A stretch of DNA of 64,000 bases, from positions 124,001-188,000 of IMG/VR virus record IMGVR_UViG_3300046665_000548; one strand, given 5' to 3'. How positions within the stretch are numbered: position 1 is the stretch's first letter; the number at the start of each line of letters is the position of its first letter. Below are positions 11,483 to 46,151 of the stretch, piece after piece. Under the pieces are notes generated by a model. The model worked only from the letters and a program-made list of their open reading frames with translations. It did not search any database and was not told the DNA's origin. The position numbers and the translations under genes were made by a program.

Positions 11483-12637
11483 ATGACCCCAACATTCTGT
11501 GCTGCGGCTTGGTCGAACGCCGTTCTCAAAACAAACGGCCGAAGCTCTATCTGCTGCGCAAATTCGGAATCATACGAGGTGCCGCACCTCACCGAATCGC
11601 TTCAACATCCCGTTCGTCTCGCTGCACGCGAAACTATGTTGCTGGGTCAGCCCGCGCGCGGATGCGAATCCTGCTATATGACTGAGGCAAACGGATCAAA
11701 AAGCCTCAGACACGAATACAACAATATGTTCGAGAACTCGCTCGACCGCAAAAGGCTGAACGAGCCCGCATACAGCCCAATCATGTATTACGATCTCTCA
11801 CTGTCGAATACATGCAATCAGAAATGCAGAATGTGCGGCCCCGATTCCTCTACGCACTGGATAAAAGATTACGCCGCTCTCCAAAAAGAGGGAATAGCTC
11901 CGGCTCAGGAAAACCAAGCGCATAGTCAAATCAATTCAATCGATTCAATCATCGATTCGATGAAAAGAAGCCTTGTGATCAGGCTCTCACTGAAAGGGGG
12001 CGAACCCCTATACATGCGCGAGGTAAAAATTCTGCTGCGAAAGATGGTAGAAAATAATCTCCATAGACGAACAACCTTCCTCCAGATCATCACGAACGGA
12101 TCAGTAGCCGATCAAGAAACGCTCGATCTTCTTCGACATTTTCAAATCTGCTATATCACTCTAAGCATCGACGCGTGTGGTCCCCTCTACAATTACATTC
12201 GGGGATTTAACAAGCCGTTCGAAGAAGTCGAAGAATCATTCCGGAAGATCATCGAAGTGCTACCGAGACACGTCACGCCGCGCATCAACACGACTGTCCA
12301 AGCCCTCAACGTCCTGCATCTGAACGATCTCGAAATATGGATCAGAAAATTCTTCAACGGGCCAGTCGATCAATACCTGTCGTTGCTGATATACCCAAAT
12401 TTCCTCAACATCTCTAACCTTCCCCTCATCGTCAAAGAAACAGCCATCGCCCGGCTCCAGCCACTTGGAGCCAGAGCCAATCACATCATCGCTCGTCTGA
12501 ACGAAGAAGAAAATCCGGAACACTTTCGCCAGTTCTTCCCTTATACGAGGGCGCTCGATGCACGCCGCGACGAAAATCTTGAAAACGTAGCACCAGAACT
12601 TGCCGAAATGCTCAGTTACAAAAAAACTGAAAAATAG
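11483..12637 (+). CDS. radical SAM protein with N-terminal twitch/SPASM-like Cys cluster
   Basis: CNQKCRMC (CxxxCxxC), GGEP, N-terminal C...CC...CxxC; TAAATA 4 nt before the ATG. Confidence 0.85.
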   Translation: MTPTFCAAAWSNAVLKTNGRSSICCANSESYEVPHLTESLQHPVRLAARETMLLGQPARGCESCYMTEANGSKSLRHEYNNMFENSLDRKRLNEPAYSPIMYYDLSLSNTCNQKCRMCGPDSSTHWIKDYAALQKEGIAPAQENQAHSQINSIDSIIDSMKRSLVIRLSLKGGEPLYMREVKILLRKMVENNLHRRTTFLQIITNGSVADQETLDLLRHFQICYITLSIDACGPLYNYIRGFNKPFEEVEESFRKIIEVLPRHVTPRINTTVQALNVLHLNDLEIWIRKFFNGPVDQYLSLLIYPNFLNISNLPLIVKETAIARLQPLGARANHIIARLNEEENPEHFRQFFPYTRALDARRDENLENVAPELAEMLSYKKTEK

Positions 12638-12639
12638 TG

Positions 12640-12671
12640 TTGACTTTCGAAACATGGTCTGTGTATAAATA
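12640..12671 (+). promoter_or_regulatory. promoter of tRNA cluster 1 (TTGACT -35 overlapping T4-type late box TATAAATA)
   Basis: TTGACT 12640-12645, TATAAATA 12664-12671. Confidence 0.75.
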
Positions 12672-12674
12672 GAA

Positions 12675-12782
12675 ATGTTCGCGGATGGTCCGCGTCAAAA
12701 GGATTCGATACGTAAGATGTCCAGCTTGTTTAACAAACGCTTTTGGCGGCGCGTGCGCGCTGTCTCGGAGGTCGCAAGCTGA
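12675..12782 (+). CDS. attenuator leader peptide MFADGPRQKDSIRKMSSLFNKRFWRRVRAVSEVAS
   Basis: Codon run TTG TTT AAC AAA CGC TTT TGG CGG CGC GTG CGC matches the downstream tRNAs; 3' end overlaps the antiterminator arm (alternative start ATG at 12717). Confidence 0.75.
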   Translation: MFADGPRQKDSIRKMSSLFNKRFWRRVRAVSEVAS

Positions 12783-12813
12783 TCTGACGCTTTCACGTGT
12801 CATCAGGTTACCG

Positions 12814-12850
12814 AAGCCCTCCGAGGAAAATGATTTCCGGAGGGTTTTTT
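12814..12850 (+). terminator. attenuator terminator T1
   Basis: AAGCCCTCC/GGAGGGTTT stem plus T-tract. Confidence 0.8.
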
Positions 12851-12864
12851 CTTGTCTGCTTTGC

Positions 12865-12906
12865 AGAGCCCTCCCTGGAAAATCCTCGGAGGGCTTTTGT
12901 TGTTTT
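12865..12906 (+). terminator. attenuator terminator T2 (duplicate of T1)
   Basis: AGAGCCCTCC/GGAGGGCTTT stem plus TGTTGTTTT. Confidence 0.8.
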
Positions 12907-12939
12907 AGATAGGAGAAATACACGGGCGAATGCCCACAT

Positions 12940-13015
12940 GCTTCTGTAGCTCAGTTGGTAGAGCACTCGACTGAAAATCGGGGTGTCGGCGGTTCGAGCC
13001 CGCCTGGAAGCACCA
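12940..13015 (+). tRNA. tRNA-Phe(GAA)
   Basis: Cloverleaf, loop CT-GAA-AA, encoded CCA. Confidence 0.95.
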
Positions 13016-13031
13016 ATTCAATGCTGGTCAC

Positions 13032-13115
13032 GCGGGCGTGGCGGAATGGTTTAGACGCGCTGGCTTCAAACCCCAGTTCTTCGGAGTGGGGGTTCAAGTC
13101 CCTCCGCCCGCACCA
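13032..13115 (+). tRNA. tRNA-Leu(CAA)
   Basis: Class II, loop TT-CAA-AC, C31-C39 mismatch, A73, CCA. Confidence 0.85.
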
Positions 13116-13130
13116 GCATATACCAAGTTT

Positions 13131-13206
13131 AAGGGTGTAGCTCAATTGGTAGAGCGTCGGTCTCCAAAACCGAAGGTTGCAGGTTCGATGCCTGTCGCCC
13201 TTGCCA
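13131..13206 (+). tRNA. tRNA-Trp(CCA)
   Basis: Loop CT-CCA-AA, G73, CCA. Confidence 0.95.
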
Positions 13207-13207
13207 C

Positions 13208-13284
13208 GGTCTTATAGCTCAACTGGATAGAGCACCTGACTACGAATCAGGAGGTTTCAGGTTCGAGTCCTGATAAGACCGCCA
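13208..13284 (+). tRNA. tRNA-Arg(ACG)
   Basis: Loop CT-ACG-AA, A20, CCA. Confidence 0.95.
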
Positions 13285-13330
13285 CCTTATAGTCCACTTG
13301 GGCGCATCCACGGGGTGCTCTAGGCCGACT

Positions 13331-13405
13331 GGTCCGTTAGCGCAGCGGTAGCGCATTCGCCTTCGAAGCGACTGGTCGGCGGTTCGAATCCGTCACGGAC
13401 CTCCA
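13331..13405 (+). tRNA. tRNA-Arg(TCG), atypical identity elements
   Basis: Loop CT-TCG-AA, U73, no A20, CCA. Confidence 0.85.
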
Positions 13406-13448
13406 AATACGTGAAGGCTACGATAGTGCCAGCGAGACGATTTTTGAT

Positions 13449-13524
13449 GGGCGTATAACTCAGTTGGTAGAGTAGCTGACTCTTAATCAGTTTGTCGCAG
13501 GTTCGAACCCTGCTGCGCCCACCA
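13449..13524 (+). tRNA. tRNA-Lys(CTT)
   Basis: Loop CT-CTT-AA, A73, CCA. Confidence 0.95.
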
Positions 13525-13535
13525 AAAATCGTTTT

Positions 13536-13622
13536 GAGCCGGTGTCCCGAGTGGCGAAGGGGGCGGACTTTTAATCCGTTGTTGAGAGACCATCGTGGGT
13601 TCGAGTCCCACCCGGCTCCCCA
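13536..13622 (+). tRNA. tRNA with TTT (Lys) anticodon in a class II, Tyr-like body
   Basis: GAGCCGG/CCGGCTC acceptor, loop CT-TTT-AA, 15-nt variable region, C73, CCA. Confidence 0.8.
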
Positions 13623-13673
13623 TCTATCTCAGTTTCGCGAAGCTAAATACTAGTTTAGCTCAGTAGGACTGAA

Positions 13674-14213
13674 ATGTTTTCTTGTGATGTTTGCTCTAAA
13701 GATTTTGCCACTTATCGCGGCTTAAACGGACACAAAAGACTCCATGGAGAATCCAGGGGGACGTATGTTGAAGGCTCTAGAGTTGGCGTTGGAGGGAAGA
13801 AACCGTTTAGACAAAACAAACCGTGCCAACGGTGCGGTCAAGAGTCTTTGAACAGCAAATACTGTTCGAATAAGTGTCAGAACGCTTATGAAAAAAGCTC
13901 TTTGATTGAGGACTGGCTGAACGGAAAAGACTCAGGTCTAGCTGCGGGCAACCGTCTGAAGAAATCAATACGTGATCATCTTCTTGCAGAAGCAGAATAC
14001 AAGTGCTCTTCATGCGGTTGGGACAAGATCAATCCAAAGAGCGGAAAGACTCCGTTAGAGATAGATCACATCGACGGAAATTCGGACAATTGCGTGAAAG
14101 ATAACCTAAGGGTCTTGTGCCCTAACTGTCATTCTCTGACGCCCACATATCGGGCGTTAAATTACGGTCGCGCAAATAAAGGTAGACTAAGATACTCTCG
14201 CCTGTGTAAATAG
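13674..14213 (+). CDS. HNH homing endonuclease with N-terminal C2H2 zinc finger
   Basis: CDVC...H-x3-H, LEIDHIDGN...NLRVLCPNCH; inserted within the tRNA cluster. Confidence 0.9.
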   Translation: MFSCDVCSKDFATYRGLNGHKRLHGESRGTYVEGSRVGVGGKKPFRQNKPCQRCGQESLNSKYCSNKCQNAYEKSSLIEDWLNGKDSGLAAGNRLKKSIRDHLLAEAEYKCSSCGWDKINPKSGKTPLEIDHIDGNSDNCVKDNLRVLCPNCHSLTPTYRALNYGRANKGRLRYSRLCK

Positions 14214-14220
14214 GGGTATT

Positions 14221-14296
14221 GGCCGGTTAGCTCAGCGGTAGTAGCGTTTCCTTTACATGGAAAATGTCGGGAGTTCGATCCTCTCACCGGCTACCA
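14221..14296 (+). tRNA. tRNA-Val(TAC)
   Basis: Loop TT-TAC-AT, A73, CCA. Confidence 0.9.
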
Positions 14297-14995: not shown

Positions 14996-15754
14996 GTGAA
15001 ACAGATGTCTGCAAAATTCGATAGCCTCGTTGAACGTTTGGTCAAGAAGATGGGTCTGTCTCAGACTCCAGTTCCTGGCTTCATCATTGGCCTCAGCGGC
15101 ACCGATTCAATCATTGCATTCCTCTTGGCTTACCGTGCATGTGAGCGCCTCGACCTCCCTCCTGGTGGGATGGCTGATCGCCTTCTTGGCGTTCACTACA
15201 AATCTGGCGATAAGGTCGATTGGTTCGAGGCTGAGATCATGCCTTGGCTTGCTGCCGAATGTCCCAAAGCTACTTTGATAACTCGCGTGCCACGTGGCGG
15301 AAACGCCGATCCTCAGCGTTGGGCGGATATGCACCTACGTGCGTTAAATTCAAACGTTGATGAGAACACCACGCGATACACGCCGCACGATGCAGGCAAG
15401 AACTATTGGGTTGCCGGGACCATCAACGCTACTGAAAAGGTTCTTGGCAAGTTCAGCATGCTCGCGGAGAGCGTCAGCATCCAACTTATTCAGACCGTGT
15501 GGAAGAGCGAGATCATGGCTCTTTGTGAAGAGTATGGTGTGCCGTCGATTGCGATGGAGATGTCGCGTATTCCTGATTGTCTATGCGGGCGTGACGAGAT
15601 CGCGGCCAACAACATTGAACTTATTGATCAAATCATTCGTCACAAGGTGAAGCCATCTGAGCATCCACCTGAATTGCTCGATACGCTGTTCTCGTACATC
15701 GCGATGGTCAGGTCAGAAAATGACTTTAAGAATCGCATTCCGTACACAATTTGA
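14996..15754 (+). CDS. NAD synthetase (NadE)-like PP-loop protein
   Basis: IIGLSGTDS PP-loop, GTINATE...LG, WKSEIMALCEEYGVP. Confidence 0.65.
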   Translation: MKQMSAKFDSLVERLVKKMGLSQTPVPGFIIGLSGTDSIIAFLLAYRACERLDLPPGGMADRLLGVHYKSGDKVDWFEAEIMPWLAAECPKATLITRVPRGGNADPQRWADMHLRALNSNVDENTTRYTPHDAGKNYWVAGTINATEKVLGKFSMLAESVSIQLIQTVWKSEIMALCEEYGVPSIAMEMSRIPDCLCGRDEIAANNIELIDQIIRHKVKPSEHPPELLDTLFSYIAMVRSENDFKNRIPYTI

Positions 15755-25066: not shown

Positions 25067-25098
25067 TTGACATCGAAATAACACCTGTGTGATAAATA
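25067..25098 (+). promoter_or_regulatory. promoter of tRNA cluster 2
   Basis: TTGACA 25067-25072 and TAAATA 25093-25098. Confidence 0.75.
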
Positions 25099-25103
25099 AA
25101 ACC

Positions 25104-25178
25104 ATGAACAAGAATGTCACAACAACCGTCGTTATTATTACGACCGTACGAAGCGGGAGCTTCGAACGAACGATGTGA
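25104..25178 (+). CDS. attenuator leader peptide MNKNVTTTVVIITTVRSGSFERTM
   Basis: 11 consecutive Thr/Val/Ile codons; the 3' half forms the antiterminator 5' arm. Confidence 0.9.
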   Translation: MNKNVTTTVVIITTVRSGSFERTM

Positions 25179-25202
25179 CGCGAGTTCATCAGTTCAGTTT
25201 CG

Positions 25203-25233
25203 AAACTCCCAGGGAAACCTCGGGAGTTTTTTT
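25203..25233 (+). terminator. attenuator terminator directly before tRNA-Ile
   Basis: AAACTCCC-AGG-GAAA-CCT-C-GGGAG-TTTTTTT. Confidence 0.85.
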
Positions 25234-25308
25234 GTGCTTGTAGCTCAGTGGTAGAGCGCTCGGCTGATAACCGAGAGGTCGGAGGTTCGAGCCCTCCCAG
25301 GCACACCA
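25234..25308 (+). tRNA. tRNA-Ile(GAT)
   Basis: Loop CT-GAT-AA, CCA. Confidence 0.95.
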
Positions 25309-33476: not shown

Positions 33477-33485
33477 CGGCATGCT

Positions 33486-33516
33486 CTCAAGAGTGTGTCG
33501 CCCACACACTTTTGAG
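33486..33516 (+). promoter_or_regulatory. 13-bp hairpin sequestering the leuS Shine-Dalgarno
   Basis: CTCAAGAGTGTGT/ACACACTTTTGAG includes GAG of GAGGA. Confidence 0.7.
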
Positions 33517-33522
33517 GACGAA

Positions 33523-34785
33523 ATGGAAAACGATTTTTACTGCACCGTCATGTTTCCGTATCCATCTGGAGCGGGACTGCACCTGGGCCATTACTACAAT
33601 TACGCGATCACCGACTCGTACTGCCGATGGCTGCGCTATCGCGGGCAGTCTGTGTTTCAACCATTCGGCTATGATGCCTTTGGTCTGCCCGCTGAGAACT
33701 ATGCACGCGAGATTGGCGGCGATCCGGCCGATGTGACGCGAGCGAACATTGCGCGTTTTCGCGTGCAAATGGATCGCATGAACACGCAGTTCGATGAGCG
33801 GCTGGTAACATGCGAGCCGCCATATGTGAAATGGACGCAGTGGCTGTTTCTGCGAATGCAGGAGCGCGGACTGGCTTACAAGGCTTGGGGTCGAGTGAAC
33901 TGGTGCCCATCGTGCGAAACCGTACTGGCTAATGAGCAGGTCCAAGACGGCCACTGCGAGCGCTGTAGTTCGGCCGTAGACCCACGAGAGATGAACCAGT
34001 GGTATTTCCGGATCACCGACTACAAAGACCGCCTGATTGCCGGACTGGATCATATCGATTATCCGGAAGGCACAAAGAAAATGCAGCGCGTCTGGCTGGA
34101 GAACCTGCAAGATTGGTGCGTGTCTCGTCAACGTAAATGGGGCTGCCCGATCCCGGTAGAGGGAGAAACGGATACCCTGGATACGTTCGTGGACTCGTCA
34201 TTTTACTTTCTGCGGTATCTGACCGATTCGACGGAGGAGTTTTTGCCAGAGGGTGCGTTCAAACAGGTCGATCTGTACGTGGGCGGGGCCGAGCATGCCT
34301 GTATGCATCTGATCTACGCGCGCTTTGTGCATATGTTTCTGTATGATATCGGCGTCGTTCCAGTTGAGGAGCCATTCAAAAAGGTCATTCACCAGGGCAT
34401 GATCACCAAGGATGGGGCAAAGATGTCCAAGTCCAAGGGAAACGCGGTCAACGCGGATGATTATGATGCGGATGAACTGCGGTTCTACCTGATGTTCCTG
34501 GGACATTACTTCGACGGTGGTGATTGGTCCGATCAACACATCACTGGCGTTCGTCGCTTTTTCGGCAAGATGAAACGTTGGATGAGCGAACCCGGCTCGG
34601 ATCAAATCGACACGTCTAAGTTCGAGGAACTGATCGACCGCAACACGCGAGCGTTCAAGTTCAACAAGGTGGTAAGCGGCTTCATGGAGTTCTATAATCA
34701 GAACAAATCACGTAAGCCTGATGCGGAAAGCTGTCAGAAAATCGAGACACTACTGCGAATATTCGCACCTGGATTCGGTAACTAA
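33523..34785 (+). CDS. leuS: leucyl-tRNA synthetase, minimal (no CP1 editing domain)
   Basis: MFPYPSGAGLHLGH, GYDAFGLPAEN, WCPSCETVLANEQV, DWCVSRQRKWG, DTFVDSS, KMSKS; only 420 aa. Confidence 0.9.
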   Translation: MENDFYCTVMFPYPSGAGLHLGHYYNYAITDSYCRWLRYRGQSVFQPFGYDAFGLPAENYAREIGGDPADVTRANIARFRVQMDRMNTQFDERLVTCEPPYVKWTQWLFLRMQERGLAYKAWGRVNWCPSCETVLANEQVQDGHCERCSSAVDPREMNQWYFRITDYKDRLIAGLDHIDYPEGTKKMQRVWLENLQDWCVSRQRKWGCPIPVEGETDTLDTFVDSSFYFLRYLTDSTEEFLPEGAFKQVDLYVGGAEHACMHLIYARFVHMFLYDIGVVPVEEPFKKVIHQGMITKDGAKMSKSKGNAVNADDYDADELRFYLMFLGHYFDGGDWSDQHITGVRRFFGKMKRWMSEPGSDQIDTSKFEELIDRNTRAFKFNKVVSGFMEFYNQNKSRKPDAESCQKIETLLRIFAPGFGN

Positions 34786-35391: not shown

Positions 35392-36193
35392 TGCAGATCG
35401 AGAACCGCATTAGTATCATCAAGCGTCGCATCAGCGATCTTGAGCAACGATCAGAAGAAAATGGCGATCATGTTTACCAGTTAAGGGATGATATCTTGTC
35501 TGGAAAGATCAGCCAAAGTGAATTTACCGCTAGACTAGATCGGGTTCGCGAAGTACATTCCAGTCTTCGTGTCGAGCTTGATGCTTTGGCGCGCGAAGCT
35601 GGAGCGTTACGTGGAGCAATTACATCGTGATTATCTAGATATCTTGGCGAAGAAGTTTCGCGCCGAGGTAATGATCGTAACTGCCGATGCTTTTATTGAT
35701 AGGCATCTCGACACTGGTCTGACAATCGAAGACATGGCGACGCGGTTGAACACCAGCGCCGATGCGATTCGCCGTATGTTCGACATGAATGACCCCGCTA
35801 CCAAACGGGGTCTCGGTCTGTTGTCCGATATGTGCGCCGCTTTGGGATGCCGCCCGGTCGTTACCATTCGCGATATCGGCAGTCCTCCTGAAATCACTAC
35901 AGATCGCGAAACTCGTACCGGGGACCATCTGCTCCAAGTGGCGAAATCGCTCGGGTGGCCCGACGATGGCGAGGGCGCGCTTGAGTTCGTTATGCGGAGG
36001 ACACGTGAGGTTGCGCTCGAAGATGCAGCAGCCACGACCGCGCTCCGAGAGATCGCGTCTATCGGTGCCCAAATCACTGATCCGGACAACGTATACGGGG
36101 TTCAGATGACGAACCTTGCCATCGCCGCGTTGGCGCGTCCTCCTGGTTCACAAAACACTTGACGTTTTTCTAATTCCTGTCATTGGATACGGC

Positions 36194-38002
36194 ATGCACG
36201 AATATCGTTCCCATACTTGCGACTCGCTGTCGCCATCACAAATCGATCAGACAGTTCGCCTGTCCGGTTGGTGTCACCGTATCCGTAACCATGGTGGTAT
36301 CCTTTTCATCGATCTTCGCGATCACTACGGCATCACGCAGTGCGTGATCGATCCCGCAGTTCTCCCTCAGGCTGAAAGCCTTGGTGAAGAATGGGTGATT
36401 CGCGTCGATGGTACAGTGCGATTTCGACCCCCAGGTACCGAGAATTCAAAACTCTCGACAGGAGAGATCGAGGTAAAGGTAGCTTCGCTTGACGTGCTCG
36501 GACCGGTCGTCGGGGCGCTGCCGATGCCTGTCGCGCATCTCCATTCCACGAGCGACGGTACGTTGCAGGAAGTCGAATATCCAGAAGACCTTCGGTTGAA
36601 ATATCGATTCTTGGACCTTCGCCGCGAACGGCTGCACGAGAACATGATGAAGCGAATGAAAATCATTCGCTGGCTGCGTCATCGCATGGAGGACGAAGGC
36701 TTCTTCGAATTCCAGACGCCCATCCTTACCGCATCGTCCCCAGAAGGGGCGCGAGACTTTCTCGTGCCTGCTCGGTTGCATCCAGGCAAGTTCTACGCGT
36801 TGCCGCAGGCTCCGCAGCAGTTCAAGCAACTTACCATGGTTGCTGGCTTCGACCGATACTTTCAAATTGCGCCATGCTTCCGTGATGAAGCTGCACGTTC
36901 AGATCGGTCACCGGGCGAGTTCTATCAACTCGACATCGAAATGAGTTTCGTAACTCAGGAAGACGTGTTTCGGGTTGTCGAACCGACGATTCGAGATTTG
37001 TTCAAGGAGTTCGGCGGCGACAAAGCCATCACCGAGACCTTCCCGCGTATTCCGTACAAGGAAGCGTTGCTGCGTTTTGGTACCGATAAGCCAGACCTGC
37101 GTAACCCTCTGCGTATTGTGGACGTGTCCAAGGCTCTCCAAGCCGACGACATGACACTCGCCCCTTTCAAGAAAGGCGTCGGCAGAGCTATCGTTGTGCC
37201 AGCCGCGATGCTGGCCGGGAAGTCGCGCAAGTGGTTCAAGGATATGGAAGGCTGGGCACAATCCCAAGGCGCGGCCGGTTTAGGATATCTGAGCGTCATG
37301 CTGACCGATGGTCGCGTGAGCTTCGCTGGACCGCTTGCTAAGTTTTTCGGTGAGCAATCTAGCGAGTTGGTTCGCGTCGCCGCCGACACAATCTTTGACG
37401 AGGGAGATGTCATTTTCTTCGCCGTTGGCGAGGAAAGCTCCACCATCAAATTCAGTGGACTGCTTCGTACAAAGCTCGGAGAGGAGCTTGGTCTGATCGA
37501 GCAAGACCGGTTCGAGTTCTGCTGGATCGTGGATTATCCCATGTTCGAGTGGAATTCTGACGAGAAGAAGATCGACTTCTCCCACAACCCCTTCTCGATG
37601 CCTCAGGGCGGCCTGGAGGCGCTTGAGGGCGATCCATTAGGTGTTCTTGCCTATCAGTACGATATCGTCTGTAATGGCATCGAGCTTTCGTCTGGTGCCA
37701 TCCGGAACCATCGACCAGATATCATGGAGAAGGCGTTCTCCATCGCTGGCTACGACAAGGAGGTGTTGGAAGAAAAGTTCGGCGGCATGCTGAATGCATT
37801 CCGTTGCGGAGCACCACCGCATGGTGGAATTGCACCGGGTATCGACCGCATGGTTATGCTTCTGTGCGAAGCTGAGAACCTGCGCGATGTCGTGCTGTTC
37901 CCAATGAACCAGAAAGGACAAGACCTGATGATGGGCGCTCCGTCTTCAGTAACTGCAAAGCAACTTGACGAGTTGAATATCAGGATCATTCCGAGGAAAT
38001 AA
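36194..38002 (+). CDS. aspS: aspartyl-tRNA synthetase (non-discriminating type)
   Basis: [50 protein letters not shown]. Confidence 0.95.
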
Positions 38003-38652: not shown

Positions 38653-38697
38653 ATGAATTCCACTCTCACCTACTTTGAGGCGATACGCACGCTCTAA
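38653..38697 (+). CDS. putative leader peptide MNSTLTYFEAIRTL with an ATA codon
   Basis: TAAATA 6 nt upstream; ATA at 38683; hairpin and two AUA-type tRNAs directly downstream. Confidence 0.6.
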   Translation: MNSTLTYFEAIRTL

Positions 38698-38714
38698 CCC
38701 CGAAAGGGGCTTTT

Positions 38715-38806
38715 GGGCGTGACCTTAGGTAGGGCGAGGGATTTATATCCCCTTTCAGGCGGTAGATGACCGTTCGGCTGTTGAGGTTCGAATCCTCCCG
38801 CGCTCA
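38715..38806 (+). tRNA. atypical tRNA-Ile(TAT) with long variable arm
   Basis: GGGCGTG/CGCGCTC acceptor, loop TT-TAT-AT, GGTTCGAATCC T-loop; reduced D-arm, ends ACTA rather than ACCA. Confidence 0.65.
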
Positions 38807-38817
38807 CTACATTTTTC

Positions 38818-38892
38818 GGGGGTGTAGCTCAATGGTAGAGCCGTTCACTCATAATGGACCGGTCGCTGGTTCGATTCCAGCCGCCCCCACCA
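38818..38892 (+). tRNA. tRNA(CAT), most likely Ile2 (lysidine type)
   Basis: Loop CT-CAT-AA; CTCATAAT...GGTCGCTGGTTC resembles E. coli Ile2; paired 1-72, so not an initiator. Confidence 0.85.
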
Positions 38893-44864: not shown

Positions 44865-46151
44865 ATGCATGACATTAACTACATTCGCGATAATCCAGAT
44901 GCTTTCGATGCTGGTCTGGCGGCGCGCGGCCTCAAATCTCAGTCCGAAATATTGATCAACATCGATCAGTCGCGTCGGCACGCCCTGACCGAGCTTCAGC
45001 AAAGACAATCCAAGCGCAACGAGTTGTCGGCGCAAATTGGCGCGGCGATGAAGGCTGGTCAACGCGATGAGGCCGAACGCCTTAAGACAGAGGTGGTAAC
45101 GCTTAAGCACGCAATCGAAGATTGGACCGGTCGCGCTGCAACGTCTCAGACCATACTAACGCATGAACTGGAGCGTATCCCGAATCTACCGGCCGCCGAT
45201 GTGCCCGTTGGCAAGGATGAAACTGCAAATCATTTGGAAACAGTTTGGGAGCCGGACGGTGGGAGGCGCGTGATCGCCAATCCGAAGCCTCACTGGGAGC
45301 TAGGCGAGGCCCTGGGGATGATGGACTTCCAAGCTGGCACGATGCTGGCTGGGCCGAGAAGCACTGTTCTCCGTGGTCCTCTGGCCAAGCTAGCGCGGGG
45401 TCTCGGCAACTGGATGATCGACACTATGACGTTGGAGGGATACAGCGAGGTCGATGTGCCTTGTATCGTCAACGGTGAGATCATGCACGGCACAGGCCAA
45501 CTCCCCAAGTTCGAGGCCGACGCTTATCGGCTGAACGATGCCGACCAATATCTGATCCCCACGGCCGAAGTACCTCTCACCAATCTTGTACGAGACCAGA
45601 TCGTAGATGAGGATGCGCTTCCTCTTCTGTATACGGCTCTGACCCCTTGCTTTCGAAAAGAAGCAGGATCGGCTGGCCGCGACGTGCGTGGCATGATGCG
45701 CCAGCACCAGTTCATGAAATGCGAAGTCGTGATGATCACTCAGCCAGAGTTTTCTGAGATCGACCACATGAAAATGCTCATGCATGTAGGCAACCTCCTC
45801 AAACGACTTTTCCTACCTCACCGGTACATGAAGTTGTGCAGCGGGGACATGGGCTTTTCGGCAAAGAAGACTTACGATTTCGAGGTTTGGCTTCCGAGCC
45901 AAGATGCGTATCGTGAGATTTCTTCCGTGTCGAATTGCGGAGATTTCCAGGCTAGGCGAATGAACGCTCGCTTCCGCAAAAAGGATGGCTCGATCCACTA
46001 TCTGCACACTCTCAATGGGTCTGCTATGGCTGTCGGCCGGACGTTGATTGCCGTCATGGAGAACTACCAGAACGACGACGGATCGATCACGATCCCAGAC
46101 GTTCTCATTCCCTATGTTGGTTTCGGTAAAATCGAAGCGGGCATGCGCTGA
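44865..46151 (+). CDS. serS: seryl-tRNA synthetase
   Basis: GTGQLPKF, YLIPTAEVPL, FRKEAGSAGRDVRGMMRQHQF, EISSVSNCGDFQARR, TLNGSAMAVGR. Confidence 0.96.
   Translation: MHDINYIRDNPDAFDAGLAARGLKSQSEILINIDQSRRHALTELQQRQSKRNELSAQIGAAMKAGQRDEAERLKTEVVTLKHAIEDWTGRAATSQTILTHELERIPNLPAADVPVGKDETANHLETVWEPDGGRRVIANPKPHWELGEALGMMDFQAGTMLAGPRSTVLRGPLAKLARGLGNWMIDTMTLEGYSEVDVPCIVNGEIMHGTGQLPKFEADAYRLNDADQYLIPTAEVPLTNLVRDQIVDEDALPLLYTALTPCFRKEAGSAGRDVRGMMRQHQFMKCEVVMITQPEFSEIDHMKMLMHVGNLLKRLFLPHRYMKLCSGDMGFSAKKTYDFEVWLPSQDAYREISSVSNCGDFQARRMNARFRKKDGSIHYLHTLNGSAMAVGRTLIAVMENYQNDDGSITIPDVLIPYVGFGKIEAGMR

Follow-up and report, generated by a model that had tools for sequence, protein, structure and literature searches.

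A cluster of eight tRNA genes in the genome of an uncultured huge bacteriophage (IMG/VR record IMGVR_UViG_3300046665_000548) is preceded by a short ORF whose codons correspond to those read by these same tRNAs, raising the question of whether this ORF acts as a leader peptide gene controlling their transcription. The locus was examined within a 64,000-nucleotide stretch of this record (positions 124,001 to 188,000), hereafter the window, whose numbering is used throughout. ARAGORN and Rfam identified the tRNA genes, all on the plus strand, as Phe-GAA (12940-13015), Leu-CAA (13032-13115), Trp-CCA (13131-13206), Arg-ACG (13208-13284), Arg-TCG (13331-13405), Lys-CTT (13449-13524), a tRNA with anticodon UUU (13536-13622) and Val-TAC (14221-14296). 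The ORF lies upstream of these on the same strand (12675-12782, 35 aa), and its codons at 12726-12758 read TTG TTT AAC AAA CGC TTT TGG CGG CGC GTG CGC (L F N K R F W R R V R). Under ordinary wobble rules ten of these eleven codons are read by the downstream tRNAs, with seven of the eight tRNAs represented in the run, confirming what the preliminary description had noted at these positions.

This match is far beyond what would be expected by chance. The run is the single best of 89,077 stop-free 11-codon windows in all six frames of the window (the next best score nine) and the single best of 725 short ORFs (the next best scores eight), with a binomial tail of 2.7e-6 at a background of 0.22. 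A second leader in the window, situated ahead of Ile, Thr (x3) and Val tRNAs (leader MNKNVTTTVVIITTVRSGSFERTM, 25104-25178; whole module 25067-25236, plus strand), is likewise the best match to its own cluster.

A -35-like hexamer TTGACT (12640-12645) and a -10-like TATAAATA (12665-12672) precede the ORF. The former is conserved as TTGAC in L104, the closest relative found (about 81% identity in a neighbouring protein), as is GGTCTGTG upstream of the -10 element, with the block GGTCTGTGTATAAATA being identical. The preliminary description held that the two leaders of the window share no sequence; however, they share the promoter motif CTGTGT(G)ATAAATA (25067-25098 for the second leader). No other promoter for the tRNAs is visible. 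A hairpin at the start of the transcript (12680-12694) folds at -8.9 kcal/mol, and L104 keeps a 6-bp stem here through G-C to G-U changes and a different loop.

Comparison with L104 also bears on the extent of the ORF. Only the portion from ATG 12717 onwards is conserved (12717-12782, 21 aa: MSSLFNKRFWRRVRAVSEVAS), with 63 of 66 nt identical and no indel inside it. Single-base indels outside this core break the long overlapping ORFs on both strands (12612-12923 on the minus strand and 12685-12912 on the plus strand), which were rejected on this basis. The start at 12675 and the two upstream AAG codons, which the preliminary description had matched to Lys-CTT, are therefore not supported. The Asn codon and tRNA-Lys(CTT) have no partner in the conserved ORF. 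The start codon remains uncertain, as ATG 12675 lies only 5 nt after the -10 element, while ATG 12717 has only an AGGA 13-14 nt upstream, which is far for a Shine-Dalgarno site. Within the control codons, the only change in L104 is a synonymous AAC to AAT at the one unmatched codon.

Two strong hairpins with T runs, putative intrinsic terminators, lie between the ORF and the first tRNA. T1 (12813-12850) folds at about -20 kcal/mol and is followed by six T (12845-12850); both of its arms (region 3, around 12816-12826, and region 4, 12834-12844) are identical in L104, with only the loop differing. T2 (12866-12906) folds at about -21 kcal/mol, with its arms (regions 5 and 6) at 12868-12879 and 12883-12894 and a T-rich tract at 12895-12906, and in L104 a U-A pair of this hairpin becomes C-G, a change on both sides. 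tRNA-Phe begins 33 nt later, with no promoter in between. It could be supposed that the ORF is a chance occurrence in an ordinary intergenic region whose hairpins terminate the upstream radical-SAM gene, as this gene ends 3 nt before the promoter on the same strand, and a simple consensus scan flagged neither the promoter (its -10 hexamer ends in A, not T) nor the terminators (long loops, a bulge). This possibility is remote and is already contradicted by the codon match, the conservation of the ORF and the covariation described below; furthermore, in L104 the upstream gene is divergent, so T1 and T2 cannot end another operon there.

A sequence just after the control codons, region 2 (12763-12773), is predicted to form the 5' strand of an antiterminator. 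Its core CUCGGAGG (12764-12771) is an exact complement of CCUCCGAG (12818-12825) in the 5' arm of T1, and in folds of the nascent RNA it pairs with 12816-12826, enclosing a spacer hairpin (12777-12808) that was predicted in all folds and is present in L104. This antiterminator forms in the folds when the A site is at 12726-12750, and is blocked when the A site is at the last control codon or at the stop codon. Region 4 pairs with region 5 in the minimum-energy fold before region 6 is made. L104 has UUCGGAGG in region 2, which keeps the pairing through a C-G to U-G change although the peptide changes from Val to Ala, and folding gives the same logic. However, the duplex taken alone is only marginally significant (-17.8 kcal/mol, with 111 of 2000 shuffles as good), and the terminators always win in equilibrium folds, so that the model needs kinetic, co-transcriptional control. 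For the leader at 25104, the antiterminator reaches -16.5 kcal/mol and only 3 of 2000 shuffles do as well.

As only one ortholog of this particular leader was found, and it is close, covariation for the leader itself is thin, and the wider evidence comes from sister leaders. About ten further leaders were found to precede tRNA clusters in more distant huge-phage contigs. Among these, MNTTTSSTTISWSITFG precedes Ile, Trp-like, Thr and Ser tRNAs, MNTNTTFVAGRGVVANRANRG precedes Gly, Arg, Val, Asn and Ala tRNAs, MNIRRHKFHNNRISISIS precedes Arg, Ile, Lys, Asn, His and Phe tRNAs and MNTQSHHTYYHYHA precedes His tRNAs, while a non-MN leader rich in P, H, F, D and Y precedes Pro, Asp, Phe, Tyr and His tRNAs. 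Leader codon content changes together with tRNA content, with the true leader-cluster pairing beating all 200,000 permutations at both codon and amino-acid level (p < 5e-6). As a negative control, the same promoter plus ATGAAC pattern gave 120 stretches in bacterial and archaeal genomes, none of which has a short ORF followed by a tRNA; the strict promoter pattern gave nothing in the genome contigs searched.

DNA searches of GenBank phages with the cluster and with both leader regions found only generic tRNA similarity or nothing, and the closest relatives of the upstream radical-SAM protein are at most 40% identical and have no tRNAs nearby. A first promoter pattern in IMG/VR gave 99 mostly chance matches, of which only the window's own two promoters preceded a leader ORF and a tRNA cluster, and a degenerate pattern for the K-R-F-W-R-R-V-R stretch found only the window's own contig in IMG/VR. 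An NAD-synthase-like anchor reached many huge-phage contigs, but tRNA clusters are often not adjacent to it. Sinorhizobium phage Phosso has scattered tRNAs between ORFs and no leader modules, and no leader-like ORFs were seen upstream of the three synthetase genes in the window.

Taken together, these elements are probably best explained as a ribosome-mediated transcription attenuator controlling a phage tRNA operon, although in the absence of experimental evidence for this uncultured phage the translation of the ORF, termination at T1 and T2 and the direction of the response are inferred. In this model, host RNA polymerase starts at the sigma-70-type promoter (12640-12672) and a ribosome translates the short ORF. 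When aminoacyl-tRNAs for the control codons are plentiful, the ribosome would run to the end of the ORF and cover region 2, allowing T1 and T2 to fold and transcription to stop before tRNA-Phe. When any of these tRNAs is scarce, through depletion, cleavage, lack of charging or phage demand that outstrips supply, the ribosome would stall within 12726-12750, leaving region 2 free to pair with the 5' arm of T1. The released 3' arm of T1 would then pair with the 5' arm of T2, so that neither terminator forms and the eight tRNA genes are transcribed, a negative feedback in which tRNA is supplied on demand. A second, strong terminator after the first is unusual for attenuators, and its defeat through pairing of regions 4 and 5 is a prediction only.

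The same sensor may instead work through something other than intrinsic-terminator antitermination, for example by a stalled ribosome blocking Rho loading or an RNase cleavage site, or with T1 being regulated while T2 only trims basal readthrough. The tandem terminators, the marginal antiterminator and the 250-480 nt structured spacers of several sister modules, with weak or no canonical terminators, are in keeping with this. It is nevertheless considered unlikely, given the strength and conservation of T1 and T2, the fit of region 2 and the stop codon to the classical geometry and the highly significant antiterminator of the leader at 25104.

A classical sensor of amino-acid shortage, with tRNA transcription merely tied to nutritional state, appears less likely still. 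A ribosome cannot tell a missing tRNA from an uncharged one, so amino-acid starvation would also give readthrough, and the amino-acid-level match is as good as the codon-level match. However, the regulated genes are tRNAs and not biosynthetic enzymes, extra tRNA does not relieve amino-acid shortage, and the amino-acid sets are metabolically unrelated and differ from module to module exactly as the tRNA genes do; decoding capacity is thus the logical feedback variable. Furthermore, the single Leu codon is TTG, the only codon read by the encoded Leu-CAA, while TTG is only 17% of Leu codons in the phage's genes.

It is also improbable that the unit is a separate small gene for a basic, arginine-rich peptide or a small RNA of roughly 180 nt, with the tRNAs expressed by leak-through. 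The unit has its own promoter and strong terminators, the peptide is rich in Arg and Lys, and attenuator RNAs and leader peptides that act in trans are known in Sinorhizobium (PMC6614838, PMC7298713). This does not explain why leader composition follows tRNA content in unrelated modules, and the Val to Ala change alters the peptide where the RNA pairing is kept. An arginine-rich, N-like antiterminator peptide was likewise discounted, as sister leaders have quite different compositions that follow their tRNAs.

No description of such a system was found in the searchable literature or in Rfam. The closest systems are the multivalent leader-peptide attenuators of enterobacterial amino-acid operons (thr leader, Thr and Ile; ilvGMEDA leader, Leu, Val and Ile; also trp, his, leu and pheA), in which a short ORF with clustered regulatory codons, an intrinsic terminator before the first structural gene and an antiterminator strand just after the control codons probably allow ribosome position to choose the fold, with several amino acids sensed at once. 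Here, in a phage genome, the downstream genes are eight tRNAs plus an inserted endonuclease gene rather than enzymes of amino-acid biosynthesis, transport genes or a synthetase, up to six to nine unrelated amino acids appear, mostly with one to four codons each rather than long runs of one or two, and there are two tandem terminators. No Rfam leader family was matched, the best hit being His_leader at 21.1 bits against a threshold of 49 (E = 0.25), and nothing relevant was found for the 25-kb leader. The pheM leader of E. coli, which appears to apply leader-peptide attenuation to a component of the translation machinery (pheST, phenylalanyl-tRNA synthetase), controls a synthetase for a single amino acid, whereas here the products are the tRNAs themselves, which would close a direct feedback loop on decoding of the codons in the leader. 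T-box riboswitches also sense tRNA status and switch between terminator and antiterminator, but a T-box binds uncharged tRNA directly through a specifier codon and the acceptor end, has no ORF and reads one tRNA per element, while sensing here would go through the translating ribosome and cover many tRNAs at once; no T-box match was found at the gathering threshold or at E up to 10. Leaderless mRNAs, of which lambda cI from P_RM is probably an example, fit transcripts that begin at the AUG, as holds for the sister leaders, but for the leader studied here the conserved ATG lies about 45 nt inside the transcript.

The preliminary description linked the leader to countering anticodon-nuclease defences. 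Phage-encoded tRNAs have been regarded as a reserve against loss of host tRNAs and an escape from tRNA-targeting defences (PMC10264068, PMC11555353, PMC12409363), and Lys-UUU, a known nuclease target, is in this cluster; those studies concern the tRNAs and their resistance to cleavage, not a sensor that switches them on. The link is a plausible motive with no direct evidence here. It is no more than a tentative possibility that huge phages carry a modular, 'bar-coded' sensing system measuring, codon by codon, the decoding capacity of the infected cell, and switching on matching tRNA genes only when host tRNAs are depleted or cleaved by such defences, an inducible counter-defence built from attenuation. 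The modules recur in a family of 150-600-kb phages, each leader being composed to match its own tRNA set. Should the attenuation model hold, phage tRNAs would be a regulated, demand-driven reserve and not constitutive helpers, making the question of why phages carry them (codon compensation or defence evasion) directly testable; leader codons would predict which tRNAs a cluster is meant to back up, and the modules would be compact natural sensors of the availability of specific tRNAs that could be used as reporters.

Other features of the cluster were also noted. A small hairpin just 5' of tRNA-Phe (12923-12936), which may be a processing signal, is lengthened by one compensatory pair in L104. 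The gene with anticodon UUU, listed as Lys(TTT) in the preliminary description, is an atypical 87-nt tRNA with a long variable arm, whereas its ortholog in L104 is a normal 77-nt tRNA-Lys. An ORF inserted in the cluster (13674-14213, plus strand) shows Pfam and PHROG matches to an HNH / C2H2 zinc-finger endonuclease and is absent from L104.

The window belongs to the 607,744-bp viral contig IMGVR_UViG_3300046665_000548, with window position 1 corresponding to contig position 124,001. Sixteen tRNA genes were identified in it, along with genes for a class I aminoacyl-tRNA synthetase, an aspartyl- and a seryl-tRNA synthetase, and an AAA ATPase. No GenBank phage was found to be close at the DNA level.

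All of the coordinates in the preliminary description proved correct. The promoter hexamer TTGACT lies at 12640 and TATAAATA at 12665-12672, while the ORF spans 12675-12782. The codon run at 12726-12758 reads TTG TTT AAC AAA CGC TTT TGG CGG CGC GTG CGC, and the eight tRNAs at 12940-14296 are Phe-GAA, Leu-CAA, Trp-CCA, Arg-ACG, Arg-TCG, Lys-CTT, an 87-nt tRNA with anticodon UUU, and Val-TAC. Under ordinary wobble rules this cluster reads twelve codons, and ten of the eleven codons of the run are among them. Among all 89,077 stop-free 11-codon windows in the six frames of the 64 kb, the run is the single best match to this codon set, and, independently, the run at 25113-25116 is the single best match to the codons of the Ile/Thr/Thr/Thr/Val cluster that follows it. 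Among 725 short ORFs, each leader is the top scorer for its own cluster. The background frequency of the twelve codons in the long ORFs of the phage is 0.22, giving a binomial tail of about 3e-6 for ten of eleven. At codon level, the one Leu codon is TTG, the only codon read by Leu-CAA and one that accounts for only 17% of Leu codons in the genes of the phage.

A small 5' hairpin (12680-12694) follows the promoter and precedes the ORF. Region 2 (12763-12773) lies six bases after the last control codon and nine bases before the stop codon. It is followed by a spacer hairpin, terminator T1 (12813-12850, about -20 kcal/mol, six T) and terminator T2 (12866-12906, about -21 kcal/mol, T-rich tract). 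A small GC hairpin (12923-12936), possibly a processing signal, lies just 5' of tRNA-Phe, which starts at 12940. No promoter-like site was seen between T2 and the tRNA, so the tRNAs can be transcribed only by reading through T1 and T2.

At equilibrium the terminators always win in predicted folds, as is usual for attenuators, which work kinetically. In folds of the nascent RNA up to the 5' arm of T1, region 2 pairs with that arm whenever the modelled ribosome has its A site at 12726-12750, and this pairing is lost when the ribosome sits on the last CGC or on the stop codon. The predicted geometry is the classical one, in which stalling gives readthrough and smooth translation gives termination. 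The five G-rich and C-rich segments (regions 2 to 6) can pair in two registers: pairings 3:4 and 5:6 give two terminators, while pairings 2:3 and 4:5 leave region 6 without a partner, the latter register being the minimum-energy fold before region 6 has been made. It is therefore predicted that one antiterminator could defeat both terminators, although this two-terminator relay is a model. On its own, the 2:3 duplex (-17.8 kcal/mol) is reached by 111 of 2000 shuffles of the upstream 96 nt, and the pairing is suggestive and not proof. For the sister leader at 25104, the corresponding duplex (-16.5 kcal/mol) is reached by only 3 of 2000 shuffles, and the same ribosome logic holds. In this sister attenuator (25067-25236), a promoter is followed by an ATG located 5 nt after GATAAATA, which suggests a leaderless mRNA; the leader MNKNVTTTVVIITTVRSGSFERTM is followed by the antiterminator and by a terminator that ends right at the start of tRNA-Ile.

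A PP-loop "NAD-synthase-like" protein (14996-15754) was found to have homologues (43-81% identity) on many 150-640-kb phage contigs and in giant Caulobacter phages. The closest, at 81% identity, lies on a 92.5-kb contig (locus L104). In both the window and L104 the protein is encoded just downstream of the tRNA cluster, so a role in tRNA modification is conceivable. L104 possesses the same eight tRNAs in the same order. It lacks the HNH endonuclease with an N-terminal C2H2 zinc finger that sits between two tRNA genes in the window (13674-14213); in L104 these two tRNAs are 50 nt apart, and the endonuclease is probably a homing-endonuclease insertion. The tRNA with anticodon UUU of the window (13536-13622) is also unusual, possessing a 3-bp D stem, a long variable arm (a type II body like that of Ser/Leu/Tyr tRNAs), discriminator C and an encoded CCA, whereas its orthologue in L104 (9339-9415) is an ordinary 77-nt tRNA-Lys(UUU) with the same anticodon stem-loop. 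It is of note that the phage also encodes a seryl-tRNA synthetase (44865-46151).

The leader regions of the window and L104, the only close orthologue of this particular leader that was found, align at 88% identity. From ATG 12717 to the stop codon, 63 of 66 bases are identical with no indel, while upstream of 12717 the sequence diverges, and single-base indels on both sides of the ORF break the long overlapping ORFs seen in the window on either strand. Among the control codons the only change is AAC to AAT, which is synonymous and falls on the one codon without a tRNA in the cluster. In region 2 a Val codon becomes Ala, but the RNA pairing is kept (C-G to U-G, and a U-G becomes C-G). The arms of T1 are identical, T2 has a U-A pair replaced by C-G, the 5' hairpin keeps its stem through one-sided changes, and the hairpin 5' of tRNA-Phe is lengthened by one compensatory pair. 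L104 folds with the same logic. Moreover, the gene upstream of its leader is on the opposite strand, and T1 and T2 therefore cannot be the terminators of an upstream operon. These data move the likely start codon to 12717, and they remove support for the two upstream AAG codons that had been matched to Lys-CTT in the preliminary description.

The leader at 25104 and its L104 orthologue begin with ATG AAC exactly 5 nt after KATAAATA. Pattern searches for this promoter-plus-start motif, which were blind to the rest of the ORF and to tRNAs, together with the NAD-synthase anchor, recovered further modules in other huge-phage contigs (loci designated by L numbers, as for L104). In the window, the leader MNKNVTTTVVIITTV... 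precedes tRNAs for Ile, Thr (three) and Val, and in L104 MNSIVTTTIITTV... precedes Ile (two), Thr (three) and Val (two). Leaders rich in T, S, I and W precede Ile, Trp, Thr and Ser tRNAs in L107, L120, L137 and L212. In L154, MNTNTTFVAGRGVVANRANRG precedes Met, Gly (two), Arg (two), Val, Asn (two) and Ala tRNAs; in L167, MNIRRHKFHNNRISISIS precedes Arg, Ile, Lys, Asn, His and Phe tRNAs; in L171, MNRMTTRTTTTIA precedes three Thr tRNAs; and in L174, MNTQSHHTYYHYHA precedes two His tRNAs. In L209, a leader with Q, L, Y and E codons precedes Gln, Glu, Leu and Tyr tRNAs. A promoter-agnostic scan of 303 short ORFs upstream of tRNA clusters in all retrieved loci ranked these leaders first, and added a leader of a different type in L165, rich in P, H, F, D and Y, before Pro, Asp, Phe, Tyr and His tRNAs.

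With twelve non-redundant modules, two doubtful ones included, the true pairing of leaders with clusters beats all 200,000 random pairings at both codon and amino-acid level. The own cluster ranks first for nine of the twelve leaders, including the one studied here. The same pattern gave 120 stretches in bacterial and archaeal genomes, none of which had a short ORF followed by a tRNA. Between the window and L104, the Thr/Val/Ile leader has changed many codons and lost two but has kept its amino-acid classes, while the downstream antiterminator and terminator stay almost unchanged, with one added G-C pair. That leader codons change when tRNA content changes is the result which the preliminary description had named as a test. 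Some sister modules, however, lack an obvious terminator. In L107 (13358-13661), L120 (8428-8742) and L137 (500-820), the leader is followed by a weak terminator ending in TTTGACA, possibly a second -35 element, and about 130 nt of structured RNA then precede the first tRNA. Unusual tRNAs were also identified among the relatives (L107 about 13848; L167 and L166; L151), two having eight-base anticodon loops (reported anticodons TCCA and CTTA) and one being called SeC(TCA), a possible UGA reader.

On this computational evidence, the best-supported explanation is ribosome-mediated transcription attenuation used as negative feedback on the supply of the operon's own tRNAs. As the ribosome senses aminoacyl-tRNA, amino-acid shortage would also be read; however, the products are tRNAs, and the amino-acid sets are metabolically unrelated and follow the tRNA genes. 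Decoding capacity is therefore the variable that the loop can actually correct. Candidate events that may lower this capacity are host shut-off, a mismatch in codon usage, or tRNA-cleaving defences. It has been shown that phage tRNAs can rescue infection from such defences (PMC10264068, PMC11555353, PMC12409363), making the countering of anticodon nucleases, as proposed in the preliminary description, a reasonable motive, though still a hypothesis.

In architecture the element resembles a leader-peptide attenuator of the thr/ilv type, which senses several amino acids. It differs in that its target is tRNA genes, it uses many different codons (mostly one to four times each), it has tandem terminators and it lies in a phage. 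It is not a member of any Rfam leader family, nor is it a T-box. No description of leader-peptide control of tRNA genes was found in the available literature searched, and the huge-phage paper (PMC7162821) mentions neither leaders nor attenuation.

A third short ORF starting Met-Asn (14 aa) was noted in the region 38655-38892 of the window, located 6 nt after TAAATA. It is followed by a hairpin with a T run, a 93-nt degenerate tRNA-like element (38714-38806, found only at a lowered ARAGORN threshold) and then tRNA(CAT); the ORF has one ATA codon but no clear codon-tRNA match. No leader-peptide-like ORF was seen in the sequence upstream of the three aminoacyl-tRNA synthetase genes (class I, AspRS and SerRS; 33481-34785, 36116-38002 and 44865-46151). 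On the contig of L102, a relative of the radical-SAM gene of the window (11483-12637), homologues of the radical-SAM protein lie among tRNA-repair-type genes (RNA ligase, Thg1-like, YqeY), hinting that the radical-SAM enzyme of the window acts on RNA.
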